From the NCBI GenBank assembly GCA_053919585.1, contig CM132803.1: DNA of 64,000 nucleotides, one strand, 5' to 3'. This document shows positions 2,477 to 51,263 of the stretch, piece by piece. This stretch comes from Euprymna scolopes. Its lineage: Eukaryota. The position numbers and the translations under genes were made by a program. Under the pieces are notes generated by a model. The model saw nothing but the letters and a program-made list of their open reading frames with translations, did not search any database and was not told the DNA's origin. The first letter of the stretch is position 1. Each line of letters starts with the position of its first letter.

Positions 2477-5458
2477 TGTTCTGTTCCCATTTAACAGTTT
2501 AGATAAAATAAAAGATAATTGTGACTTAAGAGTTAAGCCCCTTACGTCTTCCTGGGTAGAAAAGAAAAATGACTCAGAGTGATCCCCCTTTGCGCCCTAG
2601 ACTTATATCCCTTTTGATCTTTTCTCATAGAAAGGTAATATTTAGTTGGACACCGGACAAGTAAACGGTAGCCCTTTAGTGACCGCGTGGAATCAAGGTA
2701 TTCAAATGTGATGTAATCCCATTGCATCGGCAGAAACAAACGGTATGTCAAACTACATAACCTCCATTCACCAATATTGGCCTAGACATATTTGGTCCCT
2801 GGTCCATCTCCTCACGCAGAACCTGAGGAGGCTTAGCTTACAGCAAACGATGGGCAGCCATATTCACCTGCATGGCCACGAGAGCCATACACATTGAAGT
2901 TATTGAATCTCTCGACACTTCCAGCTTTATTAATGCCCTTAGACGTTTCTTTTCTATTTGCGGCCCGGTCAAACACATACGTTCCGACCATGGCACTAAT
3001 CTTGTCAGCGCATGCAAGGAATTGAATATTGCCTCAAATATGACGACTCCCATCAACAAATATTAAGCCAAACAAGGCTGTATTTGGACTTTCAATCCCC
3101 CACACGCTCCACACATGGGTGGCACCTGGGAAAGGATGATAGGTATGGCCAAATGAATTTTAGACTATTTACCTACAAAAAAGGCATAGGAAATTAACAC
3201 ACAAAGCACTCACCACCTTAATGGCAAAGGTGACTTCTATCATAAATGCCAGACCACTTCTTCTGATATCAACAGACCCAGATGATCCTTCCTTGCTAAC
3301 CCCAGCCATGCTCCTCACCCAGAAGCTCAACCCACATACTGTTGCCACAGGTGAATTCACAAGAGAAAACACCTTTAAACACCAATGGAAACGTGTTCAG
3401 CAAGTGGCGAGAACAATATCTCTCCTCCCTTCAGACACGTACGAAGTGGGAACCCAAACAGCTCAACTTTCAACCTGGGAGCATCATACTGCTGAAAGAT
3501 GCCCAGGTGCAAAGGAATGATTGGCCGAACGGACTCGTCACTAAGGTCTTCACCGGTGAAGATGGAAACGTTCATTTGCAAAGCAGAGGTAAAAATATCT
3601 CGACAGAATAGCACAAAATTTCTCCTTAGACTCATCACAGAAATAATTCTATTACTAGCCCCCGATGAATAAACAAAAAAAAAAGAAAAAAAAAAAAAAA
3701 AAAAGAAAGAAAAAAGAGGTAGTGGCGTACAAACGCCAGACGGGGAGTGTTCTGTTCCACAGTTTAGATAAAATAAAAGATAATTGTGACTTAAGAGTTA
3801 AGCCCCTTACGTCTTCCTGGGTAGAAAAGAAAAATGACTCAGAGTGATCCCCCTTTGCGCCCTAGACTTATATCCCTTTTGATCTTTTCTCATAGAAAGG
3901 TAATATTTAGTTGGACACCGGACAAGTAAACGGTAGCCCTTTAGTGACCGCGTGGAATCAAGGTATTCAAATGTGATGTAATCCCATTGCATCGGCAGAA
4001 ACAAACGGTATGTCAAACTACATAACCTCCATTCACCAATATTGGCCTAGACATATTTGGTCCCTGGTCCATCTCCTCACGCAGAACCTGAGGAGGCTTA
4101 GCTTACAGCAAACGATGGGCAGCCATATTCACCTGCATGGCCACGAGAGCCATACACATTGAAGTTATTGAATCTCTCGACACTTCCAGCTTTATTAATG
4201 CCCTTAGACGTTTCTTTTCTATTTGCGGCCCGGTCAAACACATACGTTCCGACCATGGCACTAATCTTGTCAGCGCATGCAAGGAATTGAATATTGCCTC
4301 AAATATGACGACTCCCATCAACAAATATTAAGCCAAACAAGGCTGTATTTGGACTTTCAATCCCCCACACGCTCCACACATGGGTGGCACCCGGGAAAGG
4401 ATGATAGGTATGGCCAAATGAAGTTTAGACTATTTACCTACAAAAAAGGCATAGGAAATTAACACACGAAGCACTCACCACCTTAATGGCAAAGGTGACT
4501 TCTATCATAAATGCCAGACCACTTCTTCTGATATCAACAGACCCAGATGATCCTTCCTTGCTAACCCCAGCCATGCTCCTCACCCAGAAGCTCAACCCAC
4601 ATACTGTTGCCATAGGTGAATTCACAAGAGAAAACACCTTTAAACACCAATGGAAACGTGTTCAGCATTTGGCATAAATCTTTTGGAACAAGTGGCGGAA
4701 ACAATATCTCTCCTCCCTTCAGACACGTACGAAGTGGGAACCCAAACAGCTCAACTTTCAACCTGGGAGCATCATACTGCTGAAAGATGCCCAGGTGCAA
4801 AGGAACGATTGACCGAACGGACTCGTCACTAAGGTCTTCCCCGGTGAAGATGGAAACGTTCGTTTGCAAAGCAGAGGTAAAAATATCTCGACAGAATAGC
4901 ACAAAATTTCTCCTTAGACTCATCACAGAAATAATTCTATTACTATCCCCCGATGAATAAACAAAAAAAAAAGAAAAAAAAAAAAAAGAAAGAAAAAAGA
5001 GGTAGTGGCGTACAAACGCCAGACGGGGAGTGTTCTGTTCCACAGTTTAGATAAAATAAAAGATAATTGTGACTTAAGAGTTAAGCCCCTTACTTCTTGC
5101 TAGGTAGAAAAGAAAAATGACTCAGTGATCCCCCTTTGCGCCCTAGACTTATATCCCTTTTGATCTTTTCTCATAGAAAGGTAATATTTAGTTGGACACC
5201 GGACAAGTAAACGGTAGTCCTTTAGTAACCGCGTGGAATCAAGGTATTCAAATGTGAAGTAATCCCGTTGCATCGGCAGAAACAAACGGTATGTCAAACT
5301 TATATTAAAACATTTAGGACTATTTCATATTAAGAACATTTATCTGACCCTATTTTTGAATTTTCTTGACATTTTATCTTCGTCGGAATTGTAACATTAT
5401 TCTTCTTCTTCCATGCGTTTCCTAATCGTTTGTTTTTCTCTCTCTTCTTCCTTTTCAG
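2477..5458 (+). mobile_element. BEL/Pao fragments: truncated LTR, integrase-PPT-LTR unit tandemly duplicated (~1.27 kb period)
   Basis: LTR starts TGTTCTGTTCC at 2477, 3748, 5031; integrase motifs TRAIHIEVIESLDTSSFINALRRF, RSDHGTN, INARPL; identical LTR-to-integrase junction GTCAAA|CTACATAACC at ~2752 and ~4018. Confidence 0.9.
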
Positions 5459-6060
5459 AATGGTTTGTCAATATCAGCAAAAGAATCTCCACACTCTCAT
5501 CAAACGGCGACATCTTCAACCAAACAGCCCCATATTACAATGAAGCGCTCCAAAAAAAGCGGATTCACGGAAAGCATCAAATACCAGCCAACCCAAAATC
5601 GGCTAACAAAAGACAAGCACAACAGGGGGCGGAACATCATTTGGTTCTCACCTCCGTTTTCCCTCAACACAAAAACACGAGTAGGACACCTGTTCCTGAA
5701 ACTGCTAGACAGAAATTTCCCTGCACAACGTAAGCTGAACAAACTGTTCAATAGAAACACGGTTAAGGTCAGCTATTCCACCATTCCAATAAAAAAGACC
5801 ATCACAAAGGAATGCAATGAAAATGAAATTGAGGGCTGTTCTTGCAGATCCAGGGAAGATTGCCCTTTAGAAGGGAAAATGCAAGGTAAAATCCCTTGTA
5901 TACGAAGCGACACTCACGCATGAGACCAACCAGAGACATACATAGGGATGACGAAAAGGACGTTCAAACAGAGATTTTACATGCACAATAGTTCCTTCAG
6001 GGCAAAGACGAGGATAAAGACAGCTTTAGCCAGCCAAGTATGGCATCTTAAAGACAAAGG
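5459..6060 (+). mobile_element. Penelope-like retroelement fragment (RT thumb/linker + GIY-YIG endonuclease), copy 1
   Basis: Frameshifted ORFs: NISKRISTLSSN, RNIIWFSPPFS, KLFNRNTVKVSYS, CSCRSREDCPLEGK, YIGMTKRTFKQRFYMHNSSF, TALASQVWHLKD. Confidence 0.8.
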
Positions 6061-12986: not shown

Positions 12987-15788
12987 TGTTCTGTTCCACA
13001 GTTTAGATAAAATAAAAGATAATTGTGACTTAAGAGTTAAGCCCCTTACTTCTTGCTAGGTAGAAAAGAAAAATGACTCAGTGATCCCCCTTTGCGCCCT
13101 AGACTTATATCCCTTTTGATCTTTTCTCATAGAAAGGTAATATTTAGTTGGACACCGGACAAGTAAACGGTAGTCCTTTAGTAACCGCGTGGAATCAAGG
13201 TATTCAAATGTGAAGTAATCCCGTTGCATCGGCAGAAACAAACGGTATGTCAAACTTATATTAAAACATTTAGGACTATTTCATATTAAGAACATTTATC
13301 TGACCCTATTTTCGAAGTTTCTTGACATTTTATCTTCATCGGAATTGTGACATTATTCTTCTTCTTCCATGCGTTTCCTAATCGTTTGTTTTTCTCTCTC
13401 TTCTTCCTTTTCAGTTTTTACTTCTTAAATAAATATACCTGTTGATACTAAAATGACTATCTTCAGAGTTCCTTTGTTTTTGAAGTCAGTTGGCTTGCTG
13501 TAACGAGTTTTTCTACAGGTTGTTCCAGTACAGTAAAAACGTTTGTCTCCATTGCTGACGAGAAAGACAACAGTCCATAACAGGAAACCCATGCACCGGA
13601 ATACTAACCCATACTGCCCAAAGAATTTCATATTTATAAAATGGCTGATAACTGACTCTTACAGGATGAGGTCGAGGGCTTCACGCTCCACAAAATCGTC
13701 TAGCAGGTCCTCTGCAGCAGCCGCAGCACGTGGTAAAGCTGAAGCTGCAAAGGCTCGTCTCAAGTTCGCAGATGAAGAAACTAAATTAAGGTTAGAGAAA
13801 GCAAGGTTGGAGGCAGCTATGGACTTGTTATCTTTGAATAAGGAAGCCGTTGCTGCTGAGGCTAAAGTCGAAGCACTTGAAACTGCAGAACAACAAAGCA
13901 CTTGTAGCCATCCCAAACTGGACCCCACTCCACCTGAACCCATAAAACGCACTCTAGAGTATCTGGCCGATCAAGCAACACGCGGGCTGGAGTAGGTAAC
14001 GCCCCAGGAAAACCTTGACGAAGTTAGAAAGGACTCCTCGAAATACCACACCTCTACACCTCCCTTTATAAACGAGAATGGTTTGTGGCCCACAAACTCC
14101 ATTGTCAGCACTGACCGGCCCTCGCAGGGCGTGGATATCGACGTACGCCCTCATAGGATCAGGAACACCAGTCTGGACACTCACAGACAAAACAAACTCT
14201 TATCCGCCCTGGAACACCAGACTTATTTTATGCGGTACCTTGCTCGTCGCGAGCTCATCTCTACAGAACTCTTCAAGTTTGACGACAGGCCCGAAAGCTA
14301 CCGATCATGGAAATACTCCTTCAAGAATGTTGGTTTATCAGCCAGCCAGGAGATAGATTTGTTGGTAAAGTGGCTCGGCAAAGAGTCTTCAGAACGTGCC
14401 CAAGCCATCAGGGTCGTCCACCCAAACAACCCGGAAAAGGGTTTAAAGACAATATGGACTAGACTCGAAGAGTGTTACAGCTCGCCAGAAATAATTGAGG
14501 AAGTACTCTTCAAACGTGTCGACAACTTCCCCAACATTAATGCTAAGGACCCAGTTAAACTAAGAGAGTTCAGCGATCTCTTGAGTGAACTACAGTCTGC
14601 CAAAAAGGATGGAGACCTTCCCGGACTCATTACGTTAGATACCCACCGAGGTATAAACCCCCTGGTGCAAAAGCACCCCTTCAGTTTACAGGAGAGGTGG
14701 ATGTTTTGGGGCTCCGAATACAAGGATTGCAACCATGTTCACTTCTTACCCTTCAAAGCATTTGTTGACTTTGTTAGCCACCAGGCTAAGGTTCAAAATG
14801 ACCTGAGTTTCATGGTACTACCTCAAACTAACAAGACAGCTTGAAAGATGAACGATATCAGTGCACAACACTCATCAACCCAGACAAGAGAAACAGAAGG
14901 ATCGAAGACCCCAACCAACAGTGTCCTCTACATAGAGCACCTCATCCTCTCCAGAAGTGTCGTGCTTTCCGTGAGAAGCCCTTAGAAGAACGTCTGGCCT
15001 TTCTAAAGGAGAAGGGAATTTGTTTCAGATGTGGTGAAACAACACGCCACCTTGCGAAAAACTGCAAGACAAGAACTAGGTGCATTGAATGTGATAGTGA
15101 TCGGCATATTACAACACTCCACCCTGGACTAAGTCCAAACCCGCCAACGAGTATGGCGGGGAGGAAGACCCAGATCAGACAACAAACGTGACTTCCCAAT
15201 GCACCGAAGTGTGCGGTAGCAACCTCACTGGAAGGTCCTGTTCCAAGATCAGCTTTGTTATGGTCTATCCCAAAGGTCAACGAAATAAGGCCATAAAAGC
15301 CTATGTCATTATAGACCAGGGGTCACCAAACTACGGCCTGGTGAACTCACGTCGCGGGCCAGATTCGGCCCGCGACGTGAGTTCACCAGGCCCGTCGACG
15401 TTGAACTGACGTCGCTTCCTCGGCTTGTGGTAGCTCCGCCTACGCTCTGACGTCACCATGGTTTCCATCGCTTTAAGACCTTTGTGAGAAGGTTGTTTAT
15501 CTTAAAAAAATAGATTTGCCAATGATGTTTTAAAAAAAAAGATTCTTGCAATTTTTCGACTTATTCATTTATCTCAAAGCTGTGCAAAGTTCAATCAAAA
15601 AAATATTTGAAAATTTTTTAAAATAATAGAAATATCATTCTTAACTAAATTTCTTAAAAAAGACGTGCCAACATCAAACTGAAGAACTAAGTGGAAAAAA
15701 TTTAGAAATACTATTCACAACAACTTTCGACTTTTTTCCACTGAACCACTACCATCTCGGAATGGTAAATGTAAAACGATGGATATTT

Positions 15789-18280: not shown

Positions 18281-21200
18281 GCTCTGAGAAATATGAGTCC
18301 ATGAAACGTGGTTTAGAAACTTAAAGAAACCTCTTCACGAGAAAGTTTGCTGAAAATGAATCTGTCACTTGTACAAGTTACAAAATAGTGCATAAGATGG
18401 CAGACCGAGGAAAACCGTTTACTGATGGCAACTTCATCAAAGCGTGTATGATGGAAGCAGCAAATGACTTGTGTCCTGAGAAAGCCGATTTGTTTGGAAG
18501 TATCAGCCTTTCGACAAGTTCAGTTGTGCAGAGAACAGAAGAACTTGGAGAGAACATAGAGCTACAGATACGTGAGAAAGCTAGGAGCTTCCTGTGGTAT
18601 TCTCTGGCGTTGGATGAGTCCACTGATCTCTCGAGTACATCACAACTTCTCGTGTTCATTCGTGGTGTCAATTCGGACTTTCAGATAACAGAAGAGTTGG
18701 CATCCGTTTGCAGCATGCATGGAACAACAACTGGAAAATACATTTTCATGGAAGTGCAGAAAACTTTGCAAGACTATAACCTTCAGTGGAATCAGCTTCG
18801 AGGTGTTACAGTTGATGGAGGTAAAAACATGGCTGGAGGGAGGAAGGGTCTGGTGGGGCAGATCAGGACTCAGTTGGAAGATCTTTAAATTCCAGGCACT
18901 CTGTTCATACACTGCATCATACATCAGCAAACACTGTGGGAAAGACTTAAATATTTCTTGTGTACTGAAACCAGTCGTTTCTGCTGTGAACTTCATTCGG
19001 GGAAATGCACTCAATCACCGTCAGTTCCAGGCTTTTCTTGAAGAAATTGATTCTGATTTCTGTGACTTGCCTTATTACACAGCAGTGAGATGGCTCAGCT
19101 GTGGTAAAGTCCTGTTTCGTTTTTACAAGCTCCGAAACGAAATAGATGTTTTTCTCACTGAAAAAGATAGAGCCAATCCACAGCTGTCAGATCCTATCTG
19201 GCTGTCAAAGTTGTCTTTTTTGGTCGACATCACATCCCACATGAATGAACTGAACTTGAAACTTCAGGGAAAGGATAACCTCGTCTGTGATCTCTACAGA
19301 ATCATCAAAGGATTTCGGAGAAAGCTGTCATTGTTTGAAGCACAACTGGAAGGAGAAAACTTCTCTCATTTTCACTGTTTCAGAGAGTTTTGCGCTTCAA
19401 TCGCTGAAGATGTCAACCTCGATTTTCCAAAAAAGATTATTCGTGACTTGAAGAAGCATTTTTTGGAGAGATTTTCAGATCTCGACAGATCTGAGAGTGA
19501 CATTCTTCTGTTCCAGAATCCGTTTGATTGTAACCTTGATGATGTGCCAGTTGAACTACAGTTGCAAGCAAATGACTTGTTGAAAGAGAAGCACAGAGAA
19601 GGAAAACTTTTTGAATTTTACTGCTGCTTACCTGATCCTGAGTTTCCGAAATTGAAGAAATTTGCTGCTGGTATGGCATCAGTGTTTGGAACAACTTATG
19701 TCTGTGAGCAAACATTTTCAAAAATGAAGTATGTGAAATCAACACATCGAATGAGATTGACTGATGATCATTTGAAAGCAATTCTCTTGATTGGATGCAG
19801 CAATTCCAAACCAAACATTGATGATATCTTGAAAGCCAAACATCAGTTTCACAAATCTCACTAAACTTTTTTGCTGTTTGGGTTGTGAGATTCGGATATG
19901 TGCACACTAGGTTTGATGTAACTATCTTTTTGCTTACGTCGCCTTCTTTGAAAACCTTTTAGTAAATAAAATGTTGGTTGTCTTTGTTTTTTAATTAACA
20001 TGGAACGCTAAACTTAGTTTTTCGTCTTTTTTCCCAGAGCTTTCGTTCTGGCTTGCAAGTATTGAACAGAATGATTATGCGGCCCGCGCTCGTCATTCTT
20101 TCAGTTATCTGGCCCACTGTGAAAAAAGTTTGGTGACCCCTGTTATAGACGATCAAAGCAACAAGTCGCTGGCCGGATCTGACTATTTTGACATATTCAG
20201 CAATGAAAGTCCTTGCTATGCATATCGTCTAAAAACCTGTGCCGGAGTGCCCGAAGCAACTGGAAGAAGGGCGAATGGGTACGAAATAGAATCCATGGAT
20301 GGACAAGTCTGTTTCTGGCTCCCCACTGATAGAATGTGATGAGATACCCAACTATAGGTGAGAGATCCCTACACCTGAGATAGCTCGCCATCATCCTCAC
20401 CTTAGCTGACTAGATTCCAGAGCTCGAACCAAAAGCTCAGATCATGCTGCTTCTCGGACGTGATATTATTAGTCCATAAGGTTCGAAGACAGATCAACAG
20501 ACCCCACAATGCCCCCTATGCGCAGAGACTTGATCTGGTGTGGGTGATAATAGGCAACATCTGTCTCAGAGGAGTTCACGAACCTCTATATGTAGATACA
20601 TTCTACACTATCACCTTTGAAAAGGGAAGGGCCACAACCTTTGAACCATGCCTCAACACCCTGCTGGTGAAAGAAAAACATACCAACAGTCAAAATCACT
20701 TTCACCCTGAATACACTATAGATAACCTCGGCCTCACAATATTCCAACAAACGAAAGAGGATAACCATCCAGCGCCTTTGATCGAAGACATTAACTTTAC
20801 CGAAATTATGAAACAAGGTGTAAGAAAAGCTCCATTGCCATTCAAATCACGCAGACGCCTCCCGGATAACAAAGATGGGCAGTTAACAGGCTGACATCTC
20901 TTAGACGCACACTGCAGAGAAAACCAGAGATGCGAGAACACTTCTTTGTGTTTATGGGGAAAATGTTGGAAAATGGCCACTTACTTAAAGTAGGTGAAGA
21001 AAAATGTTGGAAAATGGCCACGCTGAAGTAGCCACTTCTCTTAAAGTAGGTGAAGAACGATGGTATTTACCGACCTTCGGCATCTATCATCCCAAAAAAC
21101 CAGGGAAGATCCGGTAGTATTCGATTCAAGTGCTCAGTACAATGGAGTATCATTGAATGACATCCTACTAAGTGGCCCCGACCTCAACAACCCCCTCATT

Positions 21201-24184: not shown

Positions 24185-27100
24185 TGTTCTGTTCCACAGT
24201 TTAGATAAAATAAAAGATAATTGTGACTTAAGAGTTAAGCCCCTTACTTCTTGCTAGGTAGAAAAGAAAAATGACTCAGTGATCCCCCTTTGCGCCCTAG
24301 ACTTATATCCCTTTTGATCTTTTCTCATAGAAAGGTAATATTTAGTTGGACACCGGACAAGTAAACGGTAGTCCTTTAGTAACCGCGTGGAATCAAGGTA
24401 TTCAAATGTGAAGTAATCCCATTGCATCGGCAGAAACAAACGGTATGTCAAACTTATATTAAAACATTTAGGACTATTTCATATTAAGAACATTTATCTG
24501 ACCCTATTTTCGAAGTTTCTTGACATTTTATCTTCGTCGGAATTGTAACATTATTCTTCTTCTTCCATGCGTTTCCTAATCGTTTGTTTTTCTCTCTCTT
24601 CTTCCTTTTCAGTTTTTACTTCTTAAATAAATATACCTGTTGATACTAAAATGACTATCTTCAGAGTTCCTTTGTTTTTGAAGTCAGTTGGCTTGCTGTA
24701 ACGAGTTTTTCTACAGGTTGTTCCAGTACAGTAAAAACGTTTGTCTCCATTGCTGACGAGAAAGACAACAGTCCATAACAGGAAACCCATGCACCGGAAT
24801 ACTAACCCATACTGCCCAAAGAATTTCATATTTATAAAATGGCTGATAACTGACTCTTACAGGACGAGGTCGAGGGCTTCACGCTCCACAAAATCGTCTA
24901 GCAGGTCCTCTGCAGCAGCCGCAGCACGTGGTAAAGCTGAAGCTGCAAAGGCTCGTCTCAAGTTCGCAGATGAAGAAACTAAATTAAGGTTAGAGAAAGC
25001 AAGGTTGGAGGCAGCTATGGACTTGTTATCTTTGAATAAGGAAGCCGTTGCTGCTGAGGCTGAAGTCGAAGCACTTGAAACTGCAGAACAACAAAGCACT
25101 TGTAGCCATCCCAAACTGGACCCCACTCCACCTGAACCCATAAAACGCACTCTAGAGTATCTGGCCGATCAAGCAACACGCGGGCTGGAGTAGGTAACGC
25201 CCCAGGAAAACCTTGACGAAGTTAGAAAGGACTCCTCGAAATACCACCCCTCTACACCTCCCTTTATAAACGAGAATGGTTTGTGGCCCACAAACTCCAT
25301 TGTCAGCACTGACCGGCCCTCGCAGGGCGTGGATATCGACGTACGCCCTCATAGGATCAGGAACACCAGTCTGGACACTCACGGACAAAACAAACTCTCA
25401 TCCGCCCTGGAACACCAGACTTATTTTATGCGGTACCTTGCTCGTCGCGAGCTCATCTCTACAGAACTCTTCAAGTTTGACGACAGGCCCGAAAGCTACC
25501 GATCATGGAAATACTCCTTCAAGAATGTTGGTTTATCAGCCAGCCAGGAGATAGATTTGTTGGTAAAGTGGCTCGGCAAAGAGTCTTCAGAACGTGCCCA
25601 AGCCATCAGGGTCGTCCACCCAAACAACCCGGAAAAAGGTTTAAAGACAATATGGACTAGACTCGAAGAGTGTTACAGCTCGCCAGAAATAATTGAGGAA
25701 GTACTCTTCAAACGTGTCGACAACTTCCCCAACATTAATGCTAAGGACCCAGTTAAACTAAGAGAGTTCAGCGATCTCTTGAGTGAACTACAGTCTGCCA
25801 AAAAGGATGGAGACCTTCCCGGACTCATTACGTTAGATACCCACCGAGGTATAAACCCCCTGGTGCAAAAGCTCCCCTTCAGTTTACAGGAGAGGTGGAT
25901 GTTTTGGGGCTCCGAATACAAGGATTGCAACCATGTTCACTTCTTACCCTTCAAAGCATTTGTTGACTTTGTTAGCCACCAGGCTAAGGTTCAAAACGAC
26001 CTGAGTTTCATGGTACTACCTCAAACTAACAAGACAGCTTAAAAGATGAACGATATCAGTGCACAACACTCATCAACCCAGACAAGAGAAACAGAAGGAT
26101 CGAAGACCCCAACCAACAGTGTCCTCTACATAGAGCACCTCATCCTCTCCAGAAGTGTCGTGCTTTCCGTGAGAAGCCCTTAGAAGAACGTCTGGCCTTT
26201 CTAAAGGAGAAGGGAATTTGTTTCAGATGTGGTGAAACAACACGCCACCTTGCGAAAAACTGCAAGACAAGAACTAGGTGCATTGAATGTGATAGTGATC
26301 GGCATATTACAACACTCCACCCTGGACTAAGTCCAAACCCGCCAACGAGTATGGCGGGGAGGAAGACCCAGATCAGACAACAAACTTGACTTCCCAATGC
26401 ACCGAAGTGTGCGGTAGGAACCTCACTGGAAGGTCCTGTTCCAAGATCAGCTTTGTTATGGTCTATCCCAAAGGTCAATGAAATAAGGCCATAAAAGCCT
26501 ATGTCATTATAGACCAGGGGTCACCAAACTACGGCCTGGTGAACTCACGTCGCGGGCCGGATTCGGCCCGCGACGCGAGTTCACCAGGCCTGTCGACGTT
26601 GAACTGACGTCGCTTCCTCGGCTCGTGGTAGCTCCGCCTACGCTCTGACGTCACCATGGTTTCCATCGCTTTAAGACCTTTGTGAGAAGGTTGTTTATCT
26701 TAAAAAAATAGATTTGCCAATGATGTTTTAAAAAAAAAAGATTCTTGCAATTTTTCGACTTATTCATTTATCTCAAAGCTGTGCAAAGTTCAATCAAAAA
26801 AATATTTGAAAATTTTTTTAAAATAATAGAAATATCATTCTTAACTAAATTTCTTAAAAAAGACGTGCCAACATCAAACTGAAGAACTAAGTGGAAAAAA
26901 TTTAGAAATACTATTCACAACAACTTTCGACTTTTTTCCACTGAACCACTACCACCTCGGAATGGTAAATGTAAAACGATGGATATTTATTAATTTTCTC
27001 GCTTTAGTAGTTTGGCTCTTTGTCTACTAAGTGTCAGAGTACAGAGCGATCAAACACAGTACAAGGCCTGCCGACCAGTTTTACCCCCTTCACGGCAGGG

Positions 27101-45525: not shown

Positions 45526-47400
45526 GCCATGACATCAAAACATCATATCAACAAACGGGGACCTAAATGTTTTCACTGTGGAAAAAATGGACATATTAAA
45601 TGTGACTGCCGTTTACTTGAAACAAAGAATGTTAAGTCGAACCCTCCAAGAAAGAAAGTTTTCTTTACTAAGAAAATACAGGACAACTCCAGCGACTCTG
45701 GTGAGGGTGAGTGTATTGGACTTTTTACACATCATGCATTATTGTCTAATGGAAAAAGGAGTGACTGGATTGTGGACTCTGGAGCCACATGTCATATGTG
45801 TAGTGATATTGAAAAATTTTCTAACTTTCGAAAACTAGATGTAGCTGAGGAAATAACCCTTGGTGATGGATTCTCAGTTGAGGCAATAGGAACAGGAACA
45901 ATAGAGCTAAAAGTGGGTGTACCGGACGGGAAACACCAGAAATGCAGGTTGTATGAGACCTTATATGTTCCAAAATTGTCCTACAATCTTTTGAGTGTGT
46001 CCAGAGCCACTAAATCTGGAAAAACCTGTATCTTCAGTGACTCAAATTGTCAATTTTTAGATAACAAGCAAAAGGTGGTGGCTACAGGTTCCAAAATTGG
46101 GAACCTTTATTATTTAAACTGTTCTGATATAAATGAATCAACCCATGCAGCAAACTCCTGTTTAGATGGTAACACAAAGGAGGAGATTTGGCATAGACGC
46201 TTTGGACACCTTGGAGAAAAGAACTTGCAAAAACTAGTAAAGGACCAACTAGTTACTGGCCTTGACTATAATATAAACAAGGAAATTAAGTTTTGTGAGC
46301 CTTGCTTGGATGGAAAACATCATCGTTCATCGTTTCCAAAATCTGGAGGAAAGCGAGCAACTCAGCTTCTTGAAATTGTGCATAGCGATGTTTGTGGAAG
46401 GATAGAGGCAAAATCGCTTGGTGGTGCTGAATATTTTGTCACGTTCATTGATGACAAATCCAGATTTGTGTGGATATATGTGCTCCAAAACAAACGAGAT
46501 GTCCCCCAAAAATTCAGTGAATGGAAAACTATGGTGGAAAAGTTCACTGGTAAAAATATAAAGGTTTTACGAACCGACAATGGAGGAGAGTATACTTCAA
46601 AAGAATTTGAAAACTACCTGAAGAAGGAGGGGATTAAGCACGAGTATACTGTTCGATAAACACCAAAACAAAATGTGTTCATAGTAATTTTTAAAACCTT
46701 TCTGGATGTCGCAGGCTCCGGTGATGAGGTATGTGTCCCCACATTTTTATTAAATGACTTCCACTCATTTTCAACACAGGTTACTCTATATTGTCTGATA
46801 TTGCCTATGCTGTTGAAAATGTTGATTGATTTTTTTCCCAACCTACAATGGAACTACAATGTAAGTCTGTAAAAAATATCCTTTATTACCTACATGATAC
46901 ATAGAAATATGGTTTACTATATGGCAAGGAGAAGGCAATCAAGCTCCTGGGGTACTCAGATGTAGATAGGGCTGGTGATCTAAATTTTGATCAGAGATCG
47001 ACCTCAGAGTATTTGTTCAAATTAAATGACTGTCAGCTGGAGAAGCAAAAAGCAAAACGTGCTGCATCATCAACAGCCGAAGCAGAATGTGGCATTGGCA
47101 AGTGCGGCACAGGAGGCGGTATAGATGCAGCGTCTAAGGCGATTTAAAATGAGCTTCAATCGAACCAACACTCAGTCAATGACATACATGACAAAAAGTC
47201 TACAATATAATAAGGAGCCAAACATCTTAACAATAAGTATCGTTATATCCGAGAGCAAATGAAAAAGAAAGCTATCAAACTGGAGTACTCAGTCAGTACA
47301 TGATAGCCGATGTCCTAACAAAAGGACTTGTGAGCACAAAATTTGTGAAGCTCAGAACTGTTTGGTGTTAAACTGGCACAATAATTCCAACAAGGAGGTT
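45526..47400 (+). mobile_element. Ty1/Copia fragment: zinc knuckle, protease, integrase (ORF 45529-46659), deletion, decayed RNase H
   Basis: [57 protein letters not shown] (PR-IN order); YSD, WRSKKQ, STAEAE, LTKGL remnants at ~46950-47340. Confidence 0.9.
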
Positions 47401-48097: not shown

Positions 48098-50098
48098 GAA
48101 AGACATTTACTGCGGGTTAACAGTTGAGGACACTTCTGGTAGCTGGGGCTTCCAGTAAGATGGCGTTCTGGAAATAAAAGGTGTTTTAAACTACTCCGAG
48201 TCAATCTCTTTCCTCATATCTCTTCCACAGGACATCCTGGTCTCTACTCACTCATAATGATATTAAATAAGTATCTGCAAGGTAAGACAAACTTTTTTAT
48301 TGTCACACTCACAAATAGATAAACTTTGCTTATATAAATCACATACATAATCAACCATATCTCTGACAGGATAAATACAGCACTCTCCTTCAATACTAGT
48401 GCACAAGTACATGTATTTTGTGACTTCAATGTCCACCACAGTAATTGGCTTGGATTCTCTACTTACACAGACACAGCTGATAGCATAACGCATAGCTTCT
48501 CTATCTCATTGCCTATTACAGATGCTACATTTCTGACACGTTAGCAAGATCAGCATGCCTCACTTCTAGATCTATTTCTGACCACAGTTCCCGATGATGG
48601 TGTAACAATTGTCCATAGTCCACTCGGAACTGCTGATCACGCTGTGATAATGGTAGAAATTGCCCTAAATTCTCAACCCAAAACTGAAGAGCCATTGCTC
48701 AAAACAACAAGGTATTATAAGAAGGTTGACTGAGAAGCCATCAGGGATCTATAGTGAGCCGTTTAGACCTGCCAAATTTGCTTTGTCTGGATCAAACACA
48801 CAGACACAGAACAAGCTGCGTGCAGTAGCACACACGCATAGAGCAGAGCACGCGCAAACATAACATAACTTTGACACGCGTATATTTCCGGTGACCTTTG
48901 ACATAACCTTCCGTTTACGTCCTTTTTCTCTCTCTCTCTCTCTCTTTTTCGCTTGACATCAAGCCATGCACACAATAAACCACGCGCTTCATAAGCATGC
49001 ACTCAGAGAGCGACAGCAATAACATGAGGTAGGCTTGTATATTTTTCACATAAATATTGTTACTTGTAAGATGCATACATAGAGAGCACACAATATGAAC
49101 AATTCAAGACTCGGAGAATGTGGTGAAATCAGATGAACTCTCCCATAAGCATCCGTTGATTATCTCCCTTTCCTACTTCCTGTACAGGCCCCTTCCCTTT
49201 ACCCTGATACCTCCTTTTTCGAGTCTCCTCGTGGTACGCACGCTTCTCTCATGGACTCCTCATGTGAGGATTTAGTTCAATAAAGCTCACTTGAGCAGTT
49301 ACTCCACTCTTTGCCTTATTCTGTTCTCGTTGGTCACTCTTTCATTACAATTTATTGAACTAAATCCTCTCCTCACTATGGAGAAATATTTAAAACCAGA
49401 ACGGCTACTTCTAGATCCCAGCCAACCTGACGCCGCAGATATCTGGACACATTGGAAAAAATCATTTGCCATCTTTCTCGATGCTGCCGGTGAAACTCAA
49501 CAAACTCCTCTGACTGACAGGCTTAAATTCAGCCTCCTCATTAATCTCGTCTCTCCAACTATCTTCAAAAATATTTCTGACGTGGACTGTTTTAATTCCG
49601 CGATGGACATACTGGACACCATTTTTATACAGTCTAAAAATAGCATCTTTTGTAGGCATCTTTTGGCCACACGCCATCAACAAACGGACGAAAGCATCGA
49701 CCAATATTTACAGTCGTTAAAAACCCTTGCCAAGGATTGTGAATTTCGTGCCGTCTCGGAGACGCAAGCGAGAGATGAATACGTTCGAGACGCTTTCATA
49801 AATGGAATTTCATCGAACTATATTCGACAAAGACTCTTAGAGAATGGGTCGCTGGACTTAAAAGCCGCTTACAACCAGGCACTCGTTATGGAAACGGCTC
49901 AGAAACAATTAGCATCCTATTCTCGAACGAATGCCGTAAGCGCGTCTACCCGAGCCGAGGAAACAAACATCACCCCACACTCCACACCCGAACGGATTGT
50001 AGCTGCTGTCGCACGCTGTTACTTTTGTGGAAGAGGGAAGCACAACAGATCTGAGTGTCCCGTGCGAAACGCCGGCGTTTCGCGCGGGACACTCAGAT

Positions 50099-51263
50099 AT
50101 CAGACACTGATATCGTTACAGACATCCAGAAAGAGAGAAAGGATTGTGAATTCATTGTCCAACATCACAGCAAACCGGTGAATATCAAGGTCGATGCAAC
50201 TATGTCTATGATTGATGGTAAGATGCATAGTCTTATATCTGGTTTGGGTGGGGCATTTTGTTGCTTGTGTACATACAGTAAAGAACAATGTCATGATTCT
50301 GTCTGTATCACCACTGGTTTCAAAATTGATCGTTCCTTGGAACAAACACTAGCCCTCTGTGAGAAAGGAATCCATCTTCCAGAAAACCGAAAGGTTGGTG
50401 ATTATGATGATCGCAAAGGTATCACCCAGGATCCTATTACCATCGAAGATATCAACAACTTGCATCCTCTCCATAATTTGCTGAGATGCTTTGGATGGAT
50501 CTTCAAGATTTGTTATCATGCCACTGCAGGACATTATTCATGGTCAGAAGCAAAGATGGACGTATCCAACCGTATCGCTAGAACATTGGCATTTCTAAAA
50601 CAAGCGAAGGAACAGATCCAGACCAAGGTAAAGGAAGAGACATCAATCACCATGGAGAAACCTGATCCAACAGGTCACGGGGGTACGTCTACGACAGGAA
50701 ATGTGGCGTCACTTATGCTCAATACTAGCAACAGAAGGTTGTTGACTGATGGAATTGATAACACCGAATTGAAGTTAAAGATTGACCGCATTATACTTCG
50801 TATGGTGGTTATTCTAACGATAAACAACTCAAACAAGAACGTCAGGGTTGCTGAATTTTAGGAGTTTTGCCGTGAAACATACCTTCTTGTCAATAAAATA
50901 TCGTGGATTCAAATCAGTCCAAGTGCACACGTTGTTCTTGGTCACAGTGCAGAACTTATTGAACAGAACGACGGCAAAGGTTTGCTGAACTTTACGGAGT
51001 GTGGCATCGAAGCAAATAACAAATTCCTAAGGCAGTATCGAATGAACTATGCACGGAAAACAAGTCAATTTGACAATTTATCCGATTGTATTAACAGACT
51101 GTGGGATAAAAGTGACCCTATGGTGTTGAAAGTATGTGAACGACTACAGTGCACTCATTGTAAAGGAGCAGGTCACACAATACGAAGCTGTGATGAGTTG
51201 AAGGAAGCACTTCATCAATGCAACAGCGAATATGAAGCACTAGTTGCCTTCTTGTCTTACTGA
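50099..51263 (+). pseudogene. RAG1-core-like transposase, C-terminal two thirds (one in-frame TAG at 50859-50861)
   Basis: MIDGK (second catalytic Asp), CCLC, PLH, GGTSTTGN, HVVLGH, ECGIEANNK (catalytic Glu), YARKTS, LWDKSDP, tail CTHCKGAGHTIRSC; ORFs 50055-50861 and 50982-51263 are in the same frame. Confidence 0.88.

Follow-up and report, generated by a model that had tools for sequence, protein, structure and literature searches.

A 64,000-nucleotide stretch of Euprymna scolopes contig CM132803.1, which we analysed as a whole and call the window, contains a RAG1-like transposon of the Transib superfamily that is inserted in the gag gene of a Gypsy-type retrotransposon and has lost its left end. 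A 50-bp palindrome made of the host flank and its inverted copy stands exactly where this left end should begin. We conclude that the palindrome is probably a scar of the P-nucleotide type, left by a hairpin of the flanking DNA: the left end of the transposon alone would have been cut, the hairpin nicked 25 nt from its tip, and the opened flank joined to the degraded element. A hairpin footprint at the left end of a RAG1-like element had been proposed in the initial annotation of this DNA. Its core stands, supported by the position of the axis, the zero spacer and the clean gag copies, while the filler at the junction, the size of the loss and the type of joint had to be amended.

The palindrome lies at 50049-50098 and is composed of two arms, 50049-50073 and 50074-50098, which are reverse complements at 24 of 25 positions with zero spacer, as annotated initially. 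The complementarity stops at 25 nt on both sides. The only mismatch between the arms, T at 50063 versus G at 50084, falls on a CpG, and the related gag near position 57965 has Ala at the same place; a mismatch at a CpG fits an old, real sequence better than a fresh artefact. When the 64 kb were scanned axis by axis, zero-spacer arms of at least 16 nt were otherwise found only in (TA)n runs, no other complex zero-spacer palindrome exceeded 14-nt arms, and the longest arms in 20 block shuffles of the window measured 9-14 nt. When spacers of up to 8 nt were allowed, the scan of the 64 kb returned one extra structure, a hairpin with 27-nt arms and a 4-nt loop. Zero-spacer arms never exceeded 11 nt in 105 kb of related loci, and no similar palindrome was seen at the many other transposable-element junctions in the window. 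A chance origin was rejected, since the shuffles did not go beyond 14-nt arms and the other long palindromes are either (TA)n or the repeat-borne hairpin with the 4-nt loop; the palindrome is present in the assembly far beyond chance.

The hairpin with the 4-nt loop is a GC-rich structure of 58 nt that occurs twice in the window (15335-15392 and 26533-26590), and the repeat enclosing it is 99% identical between the two places over at least 121 nt. Its repetition at both sites indicates a family feature, not a junction event. It had no Rfam match at the gathering threshold.

The symmetry axis, between 50073 and 50074, coincides to the base with the boundary between the target-site duplication (TSD) and the expected terminus of the transposon. 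That the axis directly follows the TSD ACGCC had been claimed before and was borne out, with the pentamer found at 50069-50073 and again at 51991-51995, immediately after CACTGTG at 51984-51990. The gag frame spans the insert, reading ...CPVRNA before it and VCKNC... (the second zinc knuckle, VCKNCNKKGHF) after it. Because a foreign element lies between the two copies of ACGCC, its left terminus is expected right after 50073.

Copies of this gag without the insert were found in contigs of three public sequencing runs (X1, X2 and X3, with two species labels), which go from 50068 directly to 51991. At this joint, 5-6 letters fit both sides, ACGCC is present once, and the palindrome is absent. 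A more distant Gypsy element in the window (~57940-58010) reads CPAR...VCKNC without interruption and likewise contains no palindrome. The possibility raised at the outset, that the palindrome is native to the Gypsy gag, is ruled out by these uninterrupted copies. We also rejected insertion of the Transib into an older palindrome, as a RAG-like preference for hairpin targets would have it, because the right flank is normal gag after the TSD.

The inserted element was recognized by its transposase, the C-terminal half of which is encoded at 50109-51263. The frame 50100-51263 is interrupted by a single stop codon, TAG at 50859-50861. Every other genomic copy seen in the three runs has CAG at position 50859, so the stop is private to the window copy and the open reading frame (ORF) of the family is open there. 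The C-terminal 133 residues (50862-51260) match HzTransib of Helicoverpa zea (6pqn, E = 5.8e-6) and amphioxus BbRAG1L (6b40, E = 6.5e-5), and both matches span the catalytic-glutamate motif E-x-x-NK-x-x-R. The Pfam RAG1 profile PF12940 gave a weak, sub-threshold match to the transposase remnant, and relatives at 57-75% identity bear PF26100 (RAG1_RNase_H). An exhaustive, profile-free search returned 528 homologues.

The window copy begins ~75 residues past the first catalytic Asp motif (HDGLDGSG in the relatives P0042 and P0043); it keeps the second catalytic Asp (IDGK), the CxxC after it and the Glu region, and its D-D-E triad is incomplete. Judged from its sequence, the window copy is a defective member of the Transib superfamily and not an active one. 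The C-terminal tail of the transposase carries a Cx2Cx3GHx4C motif, which fits the "CTT1" tail known from Subgroup I Transibs (Tao et al. 2022, PMC9435367). In the 3' non-coding part of the element, positions 51478-51912 consist of two to three tandem subterminal repeats of ~150-180 bp with 69-84% identity.

Nine related loci fetched from other assemblies show how elements of this family end. Both exact termini, CACAGTGGGC on the left and its reverse complement GCCCACTGTG on the right, bound elements of ~3.4-7.4 kb in six of them (L001, L003, L005, L006, L007 and L009), with the right terminus of L001 one base off, and L004, which is a short contig, has the right terminus only. The TSD of L001 is the 5-bp TAATG. 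Since the termini and 5-bp TSDs are conserved in these relatives, the left terminus of the window copy should start at 50074. The right terminus of the window copy is exact at 51981-51990 and the left terminus is absent.

Two further observations concern the family and its ends. In L008, whose copy has no recognizable termini, a 132-nt transposase-coding piece (5436-5567 of the locus) matches also in inverted orientation inside the forward match. In the window, a second exact GCCCACTGTG is located at 20112-20121, ~250 nt past a hAT-like C-terminal coding region (...KMKYVKSTHRMRLTDDHLKAILL...) in the area 18900-20121. It was rejected as a Transib end because this region is unrelated and hAT-like and has no Transib protein homology; the 10-mer there is probably a coincidence or a hAT terminus.

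Compared with L001, the window copy is short of ~2.0 kb, the left terminus included. In the full-length homologues (~590-790 residues), the alignment begins at about residue 354, and the missing part of the transposase amounts to ~354 of ~740 residues, the first catalytic Asp among them. About half of the protein is lost, not the N-terminal third as had been annotated. Family contigs from other genomic places align with 50108-51990 and then diverge into different flanks, and the end of their homology at 51990 confirms this position as the terminus. Upstream of 50108, the other copies differ from the window and encode LMGNENRENL in frame (LMGKETRENC in relatives). This normal coding sequence indicates that the window copy is truly broken at 50108, and it led us to reject the notion that the family itself is a 2-kb deletion derivative from which the window copy had lost only ~100 nt. 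An extension of the tblastn match into 49983-50107, considered as kept transposase, was rejected as a chance, out-of-frame similarity across a stop codon. The family De Bruijn contigs of X1, X2 and X3 all end 94-129 nt upstream of the equivalent of 50108, and this common end may mark a subfamily branch point or a common structural variant.

The palindrome had been described as joining straight into transposase sequence. In fact, 9 nt (50099-50107) intervene, and homology to the family starts at 50108. This filler matches neither the flank nor the transposon family, and the nearby likenesses, GACACT at 50087 and CAGACA at 50119, are only 6 nt long and within chance. The coordinates of all these features are collected in Table 1.

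Table 1. Features of the interrupted Gypsy element and of the transposon inserted in it (positions in the window).
Feature	Position	Strand	Basis or remark
Gypsy-type 5' long terminal repeat (LTR) of the host retrotransposon	49112..49349 (limits approximate)	+	~95% identity to 53361-53500, in two blocks
Gypsy gag coding sequence until the insertion point, ending in the first zinc knuckle ...CYFCGRGKHNRSECPVRNA	49378..50073	+	ORF list; weak Retrotrans_gag match; colinear with uninterrupted gag contigs
Left palindrome arm, original host gag flank	50049..50073	+	Continuous gag in other copies
Left TSD copy ACGCC, 5 bp	50069..50073	+	Same pentamer after the right terminus
Right palindrome arm, inverted flank copy, P-nucleotide-like tract	50074..50098	+	Sits where the left terminus CACAGTGGGC... 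is expected; missing from uninterrupted gag and from other transposon copies
Junctional filler ATCAGACAC, 9 nt	50099..50107	+	Outside the palindrome; differs from the coding sequence of other family copies
Transib-superfamily (RAG1-like) transposon, 5'-truncated	50108..51990	+	Holds the C-terminal transposase half, the 3' non-coding part (subterminal repeats included) and the terminus
Right terminus GCCCACTGTG, like the heptamer of a recombination signal sequence	51981..51990	+	Same 10-mer ends the elements in L003-L007 and L009
Right TSD copy ACGCC	51991..51995	+	Directly after the right terminus
Rest of the Gypsy internal region, much shortened: second zinc knuckle, protease, start of reverse transcriptase	51996..53360	+	
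Gypsy 3' LTR, shorter than the 5' LTR	53361..53500	+	

Enzymes of the Transib, RAG and hAT families are reported to seal flanking DNA into a hairpin after nicking the end of the element (PMC5499845; bioRxiv 10.64898/2026.08.26.747230). Reading round such a hairpin would give the flank followed by its own reverse complement; the axis would be the cleavage site and no loop would intervene, as is seen at 50049-50098. A zero-spacer palindrome would require a covalent hairpin, since fold-back priming leaves a loop. In hAT elements, the cleavage is offset by one nucleotide and the axis base is usually altered in the footprints. The exact axis in the window, without a one-base offset, fits RAG/Transib chemistry better than hAT chemistry.

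We therefore favor the following course of events, most of which is conditional on a hairpin having formed. A full-length Transib-superfamily transposon of ~3.6-3.9 kb would have inserted into the Gypsy gag, duplicating ACGCC, and its transposase would later have cut the left end alone. This order is indicated by the TSD inside the palindrome together with the intact right TSD copy, which imply a complete insertion before the cleavage of the left end. The intact right junction speaks for a hairpin at the left end alone, or else for a cleavage partner at another place. The 3'-OH of the flank would have attacked the opposite strand, and the flank including the TSD would have been sealed as a covalent hairpin. 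Then, a host nuclease would have nicked the hairpin on its 5'-terminated strand, 25 nt away from the tip; the 25 palindromic bases of the top strand point to this strand and distance. Unfolding of the hairpin would have produced a long 3' tail with 25 palindromic nt. The exposed transposon end would have shed ~2 kb through degradation or a second break, and end-joining of both ends would have added 9 nt. What remains would be an inactive element with one end, bordered by a 50-bp palindrome of the flank and fixed in the germline; one arm would since have undergone a CpG-to-TpG change.

A more general mechanism can be put forward only tentatively, and we regard it as possible though doubtful: a Transib from the lineage nearest to RAG1 may carry out uncoupled, single-end hairpin cleavage in vivo, after which the invertebrate host would open the hairpin distally, ~25 nt away on the 5' strand in the manner of MRN/CtIP instead of at the tip as Artemis does, and join the ends by a polymerase-theta-type pathway.

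Several points weigh against a flank hairpin at a single cut end. The scar is a single instance. RAG as a rule cleaves paired ends (coupled cleavage), and the same has been reported for Transib, so that a one-end cut needs a special case, and a P tract of 25 nt far exceeds the P nucleotides typical of V(D)J joints (usually 1-4 nt; see PMC3528771). The favored course also gives no detailed account of the 9-nt filler and the 2-kb loss. The nine related loci showed no further palindrome at truncated ends, in a survey that contained at most two truncation candidates and had low power because seven loci keep conserved termini (six both, L004 the right one only). In addition, the junction was not confirmed in the raw reads sampled or in an independent assembly.

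The last point bears on whether the inverted duplication could be an artefact of sequencing or assembly, made by a chimeric or fold-back read. No read-level support for the junction was obtained: the five junction words sampled occur in no indexed sequencing run, the Hi-C raw reads were sampled at ~1 in 100 and gave ~1x depth at the junction, and neither the junction-spanning ORF nor the junction was found by an exact-ORF look-up in other assemblies and by pattern scans of metagenomes. The absence of the junction words is, however, what is expected for a single-copy site at ~1-4x run coverage. Fold-back artefacts in long reads are palindromes of read length, not of 25 nt within colinear sequence, and arms that differ at a CpG are unlike a copying artefact. 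Moreover, the flanks share one Gypsy copy with matching LTRs and TSD, which indicates that the larger structure is sound. We thus consider an artefact very unlikely. The palindrome could also have arisen without any transposase, if the flank was copied in reverse by a fold-back or template switch (polymerase-theta snap-back or microhomology-mediated break-induced replication) during repair of the 2-kb deletion. The filler and the short repeats (GACACT at 50087 and 50102) do resemble joints of the polymerase-theta type, and template switching is known to yield inverted duplications. Yet snap-back priming needs a loop and microhomology and would leave a spacer, whereas the arms here meet without a spacer, and the base copied first is paired with the last base of the flank; the breakpoint would have hit the TSD/terminus base by chance, and no other such palindrome is found at junctions in the 64 kb and the 105 kb. 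These features make a fold-back origin unlikely.

A third course keeps the hairpin and abandons the single cut. If the left terminus and a cryptic internal signal had been cut in a coupled way, the excised mini-element would comprise the first 2 kb, and the joining of the two hairpinned ends would have created a true coding joint. Such a cut would obey the paired-end rule and account for the loss of the left part without long resection, and a one-sided P tract with a short non-templated insert is typical of coding joints. However, the 30 nt before 50108 in the family copies contain no CACTGTG-like heptamer at the breakpoint, and the nearest motif, ACTGATG, lies 23-30 nt upstream and does not have the critical terminal GTG, leaving this course a slim chance. 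The initial annotation had called the junction a coding-joint analogue. That description was abandoned, as was a V(D)J-type coding joint in general, because the right terminus and TSD are intact, no heptamer-like signal is seen at the breakpoint in the family sequence, and the flank is rejoined to its own element, as in a joint of the open-and-shut type with a deletion.

The scar that a flank hairpin would have left can be compared with V(D)J recombination. Like P nucleotides, including the long tracts in scid, DNA-PKcs- or Artemis-deficient lymphocytes, and like open-and-shut joints, the palindrome is a contiguous inverted copy of the flank. As in V(D)J joints, its axis lies at a RAG-type cleavage site beside a CACAGTG-type heptamer and a non-templated insert is present, and as in open-and-shut joints, flank and signal side of one and the same end are rejoined. 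V(D)J joints are somatic and arise in lymphocytes, whereas this one is fixed in the germline, in a repeat landscape of the invertebrate type. Signal ends in V(D)J recombination are normally joined intact, in contrast to a signal side that is ~2 kb shorter here, and no RAG2-like partner is visible in the window. By analogy, the nearest V(D)J counterpart of the product would be an open-and-shut joint that has a long P tract and lacks a large part of the signal side.

Among transposons, the element resembles Transib (HzTransib; Subgroup I, PMC9435367) and ProtoRAG in the C-terminal half of the transposase, the 5-bp TSD, the CACAGTG/CACTGTG terminus and the Cx2Cx3GHx4C motif. Unlike a working Transib, the window copy is dead, with no first catalytic Asp, no left terminus and an in-frame stop, and while the flank hairpins of Transib were demonstrated in vitro, the window offers only a scar in the genome that fits one. 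For a Ds element accompanied by a 598-bp inverted repeat of its flanking DNA, the explanation has been a hairpin with a distant nick (Langer et al. 2007, PMC1978519). That Ds element, the hAT footprints and the fractured Ac of maize have in common with the window an inverted duplication of the flank beside an element that makes hairpins, and one-ended, half-deleted remnants. They differ in belonging to another superfamily, and the axis here is exact, as expected of RAG/Transib chemistry. In our incomplete coverage of the literature, we found no description of such footprints in natural genomes for Transib or RAG-like transposons, and the word "footprint" is absent from PMC7204232.

With respect to the host factors, the nick on the 5' strand ~25 nt from the closed end, the 3' tail and the short filler that we infer would be similar to the action of MRN-CtIP or MRX-Sae2 followed by polymerase-theta joining. 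MRN-CtIP and MRX-Sae2 incise the 5'-terminated strand with similar polarity and range from blocked or hairpin-capped ends. We propose this likeness as a mechanistic analogy only.

The surroundings of the insertion contain other nested elements. The flanks of the Gypsy element, 49000-49111 and 53492-53599, show ~95% identity to a single uninterrupted stretch (55820-56030), which we read as a paralogous "empty site", another copy of the repeat in which the Gypsy sits. An ORF of 376 amino acids at 45529-46659, with a Copia-type gag knuckle, a protease and the start of an integrase, represents another nested retroelement.

Flank hairpins are the chemical hallmark by which V(D)J recombination is tied to Transib and RAG-like transposons, and the evidence for them in these elements comes mainly from purified proteins or cell assays. 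A fixed scar that has the exact hairpin geometry (zero spacer, an axis at the TSD/heptamer boundary and no offset) would be in vivo evidence from the germline, in a genome of the marine-invertebrate type. The scar is of a known kind, classical for hAT, and is a new example, from the transposon lineage that bears most closely on how RAG arose. As a lone, unconfirmed case it is an instructive anecdote and establishes no new mechanism. It also provides a search image: counts of such scars across genomes could gauge how frequently single ends are cut and where hairpins are opened, and could tell whether hosts without an Artemis/DNA-PKcs pathway specialized for this task, as in vertebrates, generally leave long P tracts. 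If the more general mechanism holds, zero-spacer flank palindromes at TSD-defined transposon ends would form a fossil record, open to mining, of the repair that RAG-type breaks underwent before V(D)J recombination existed.
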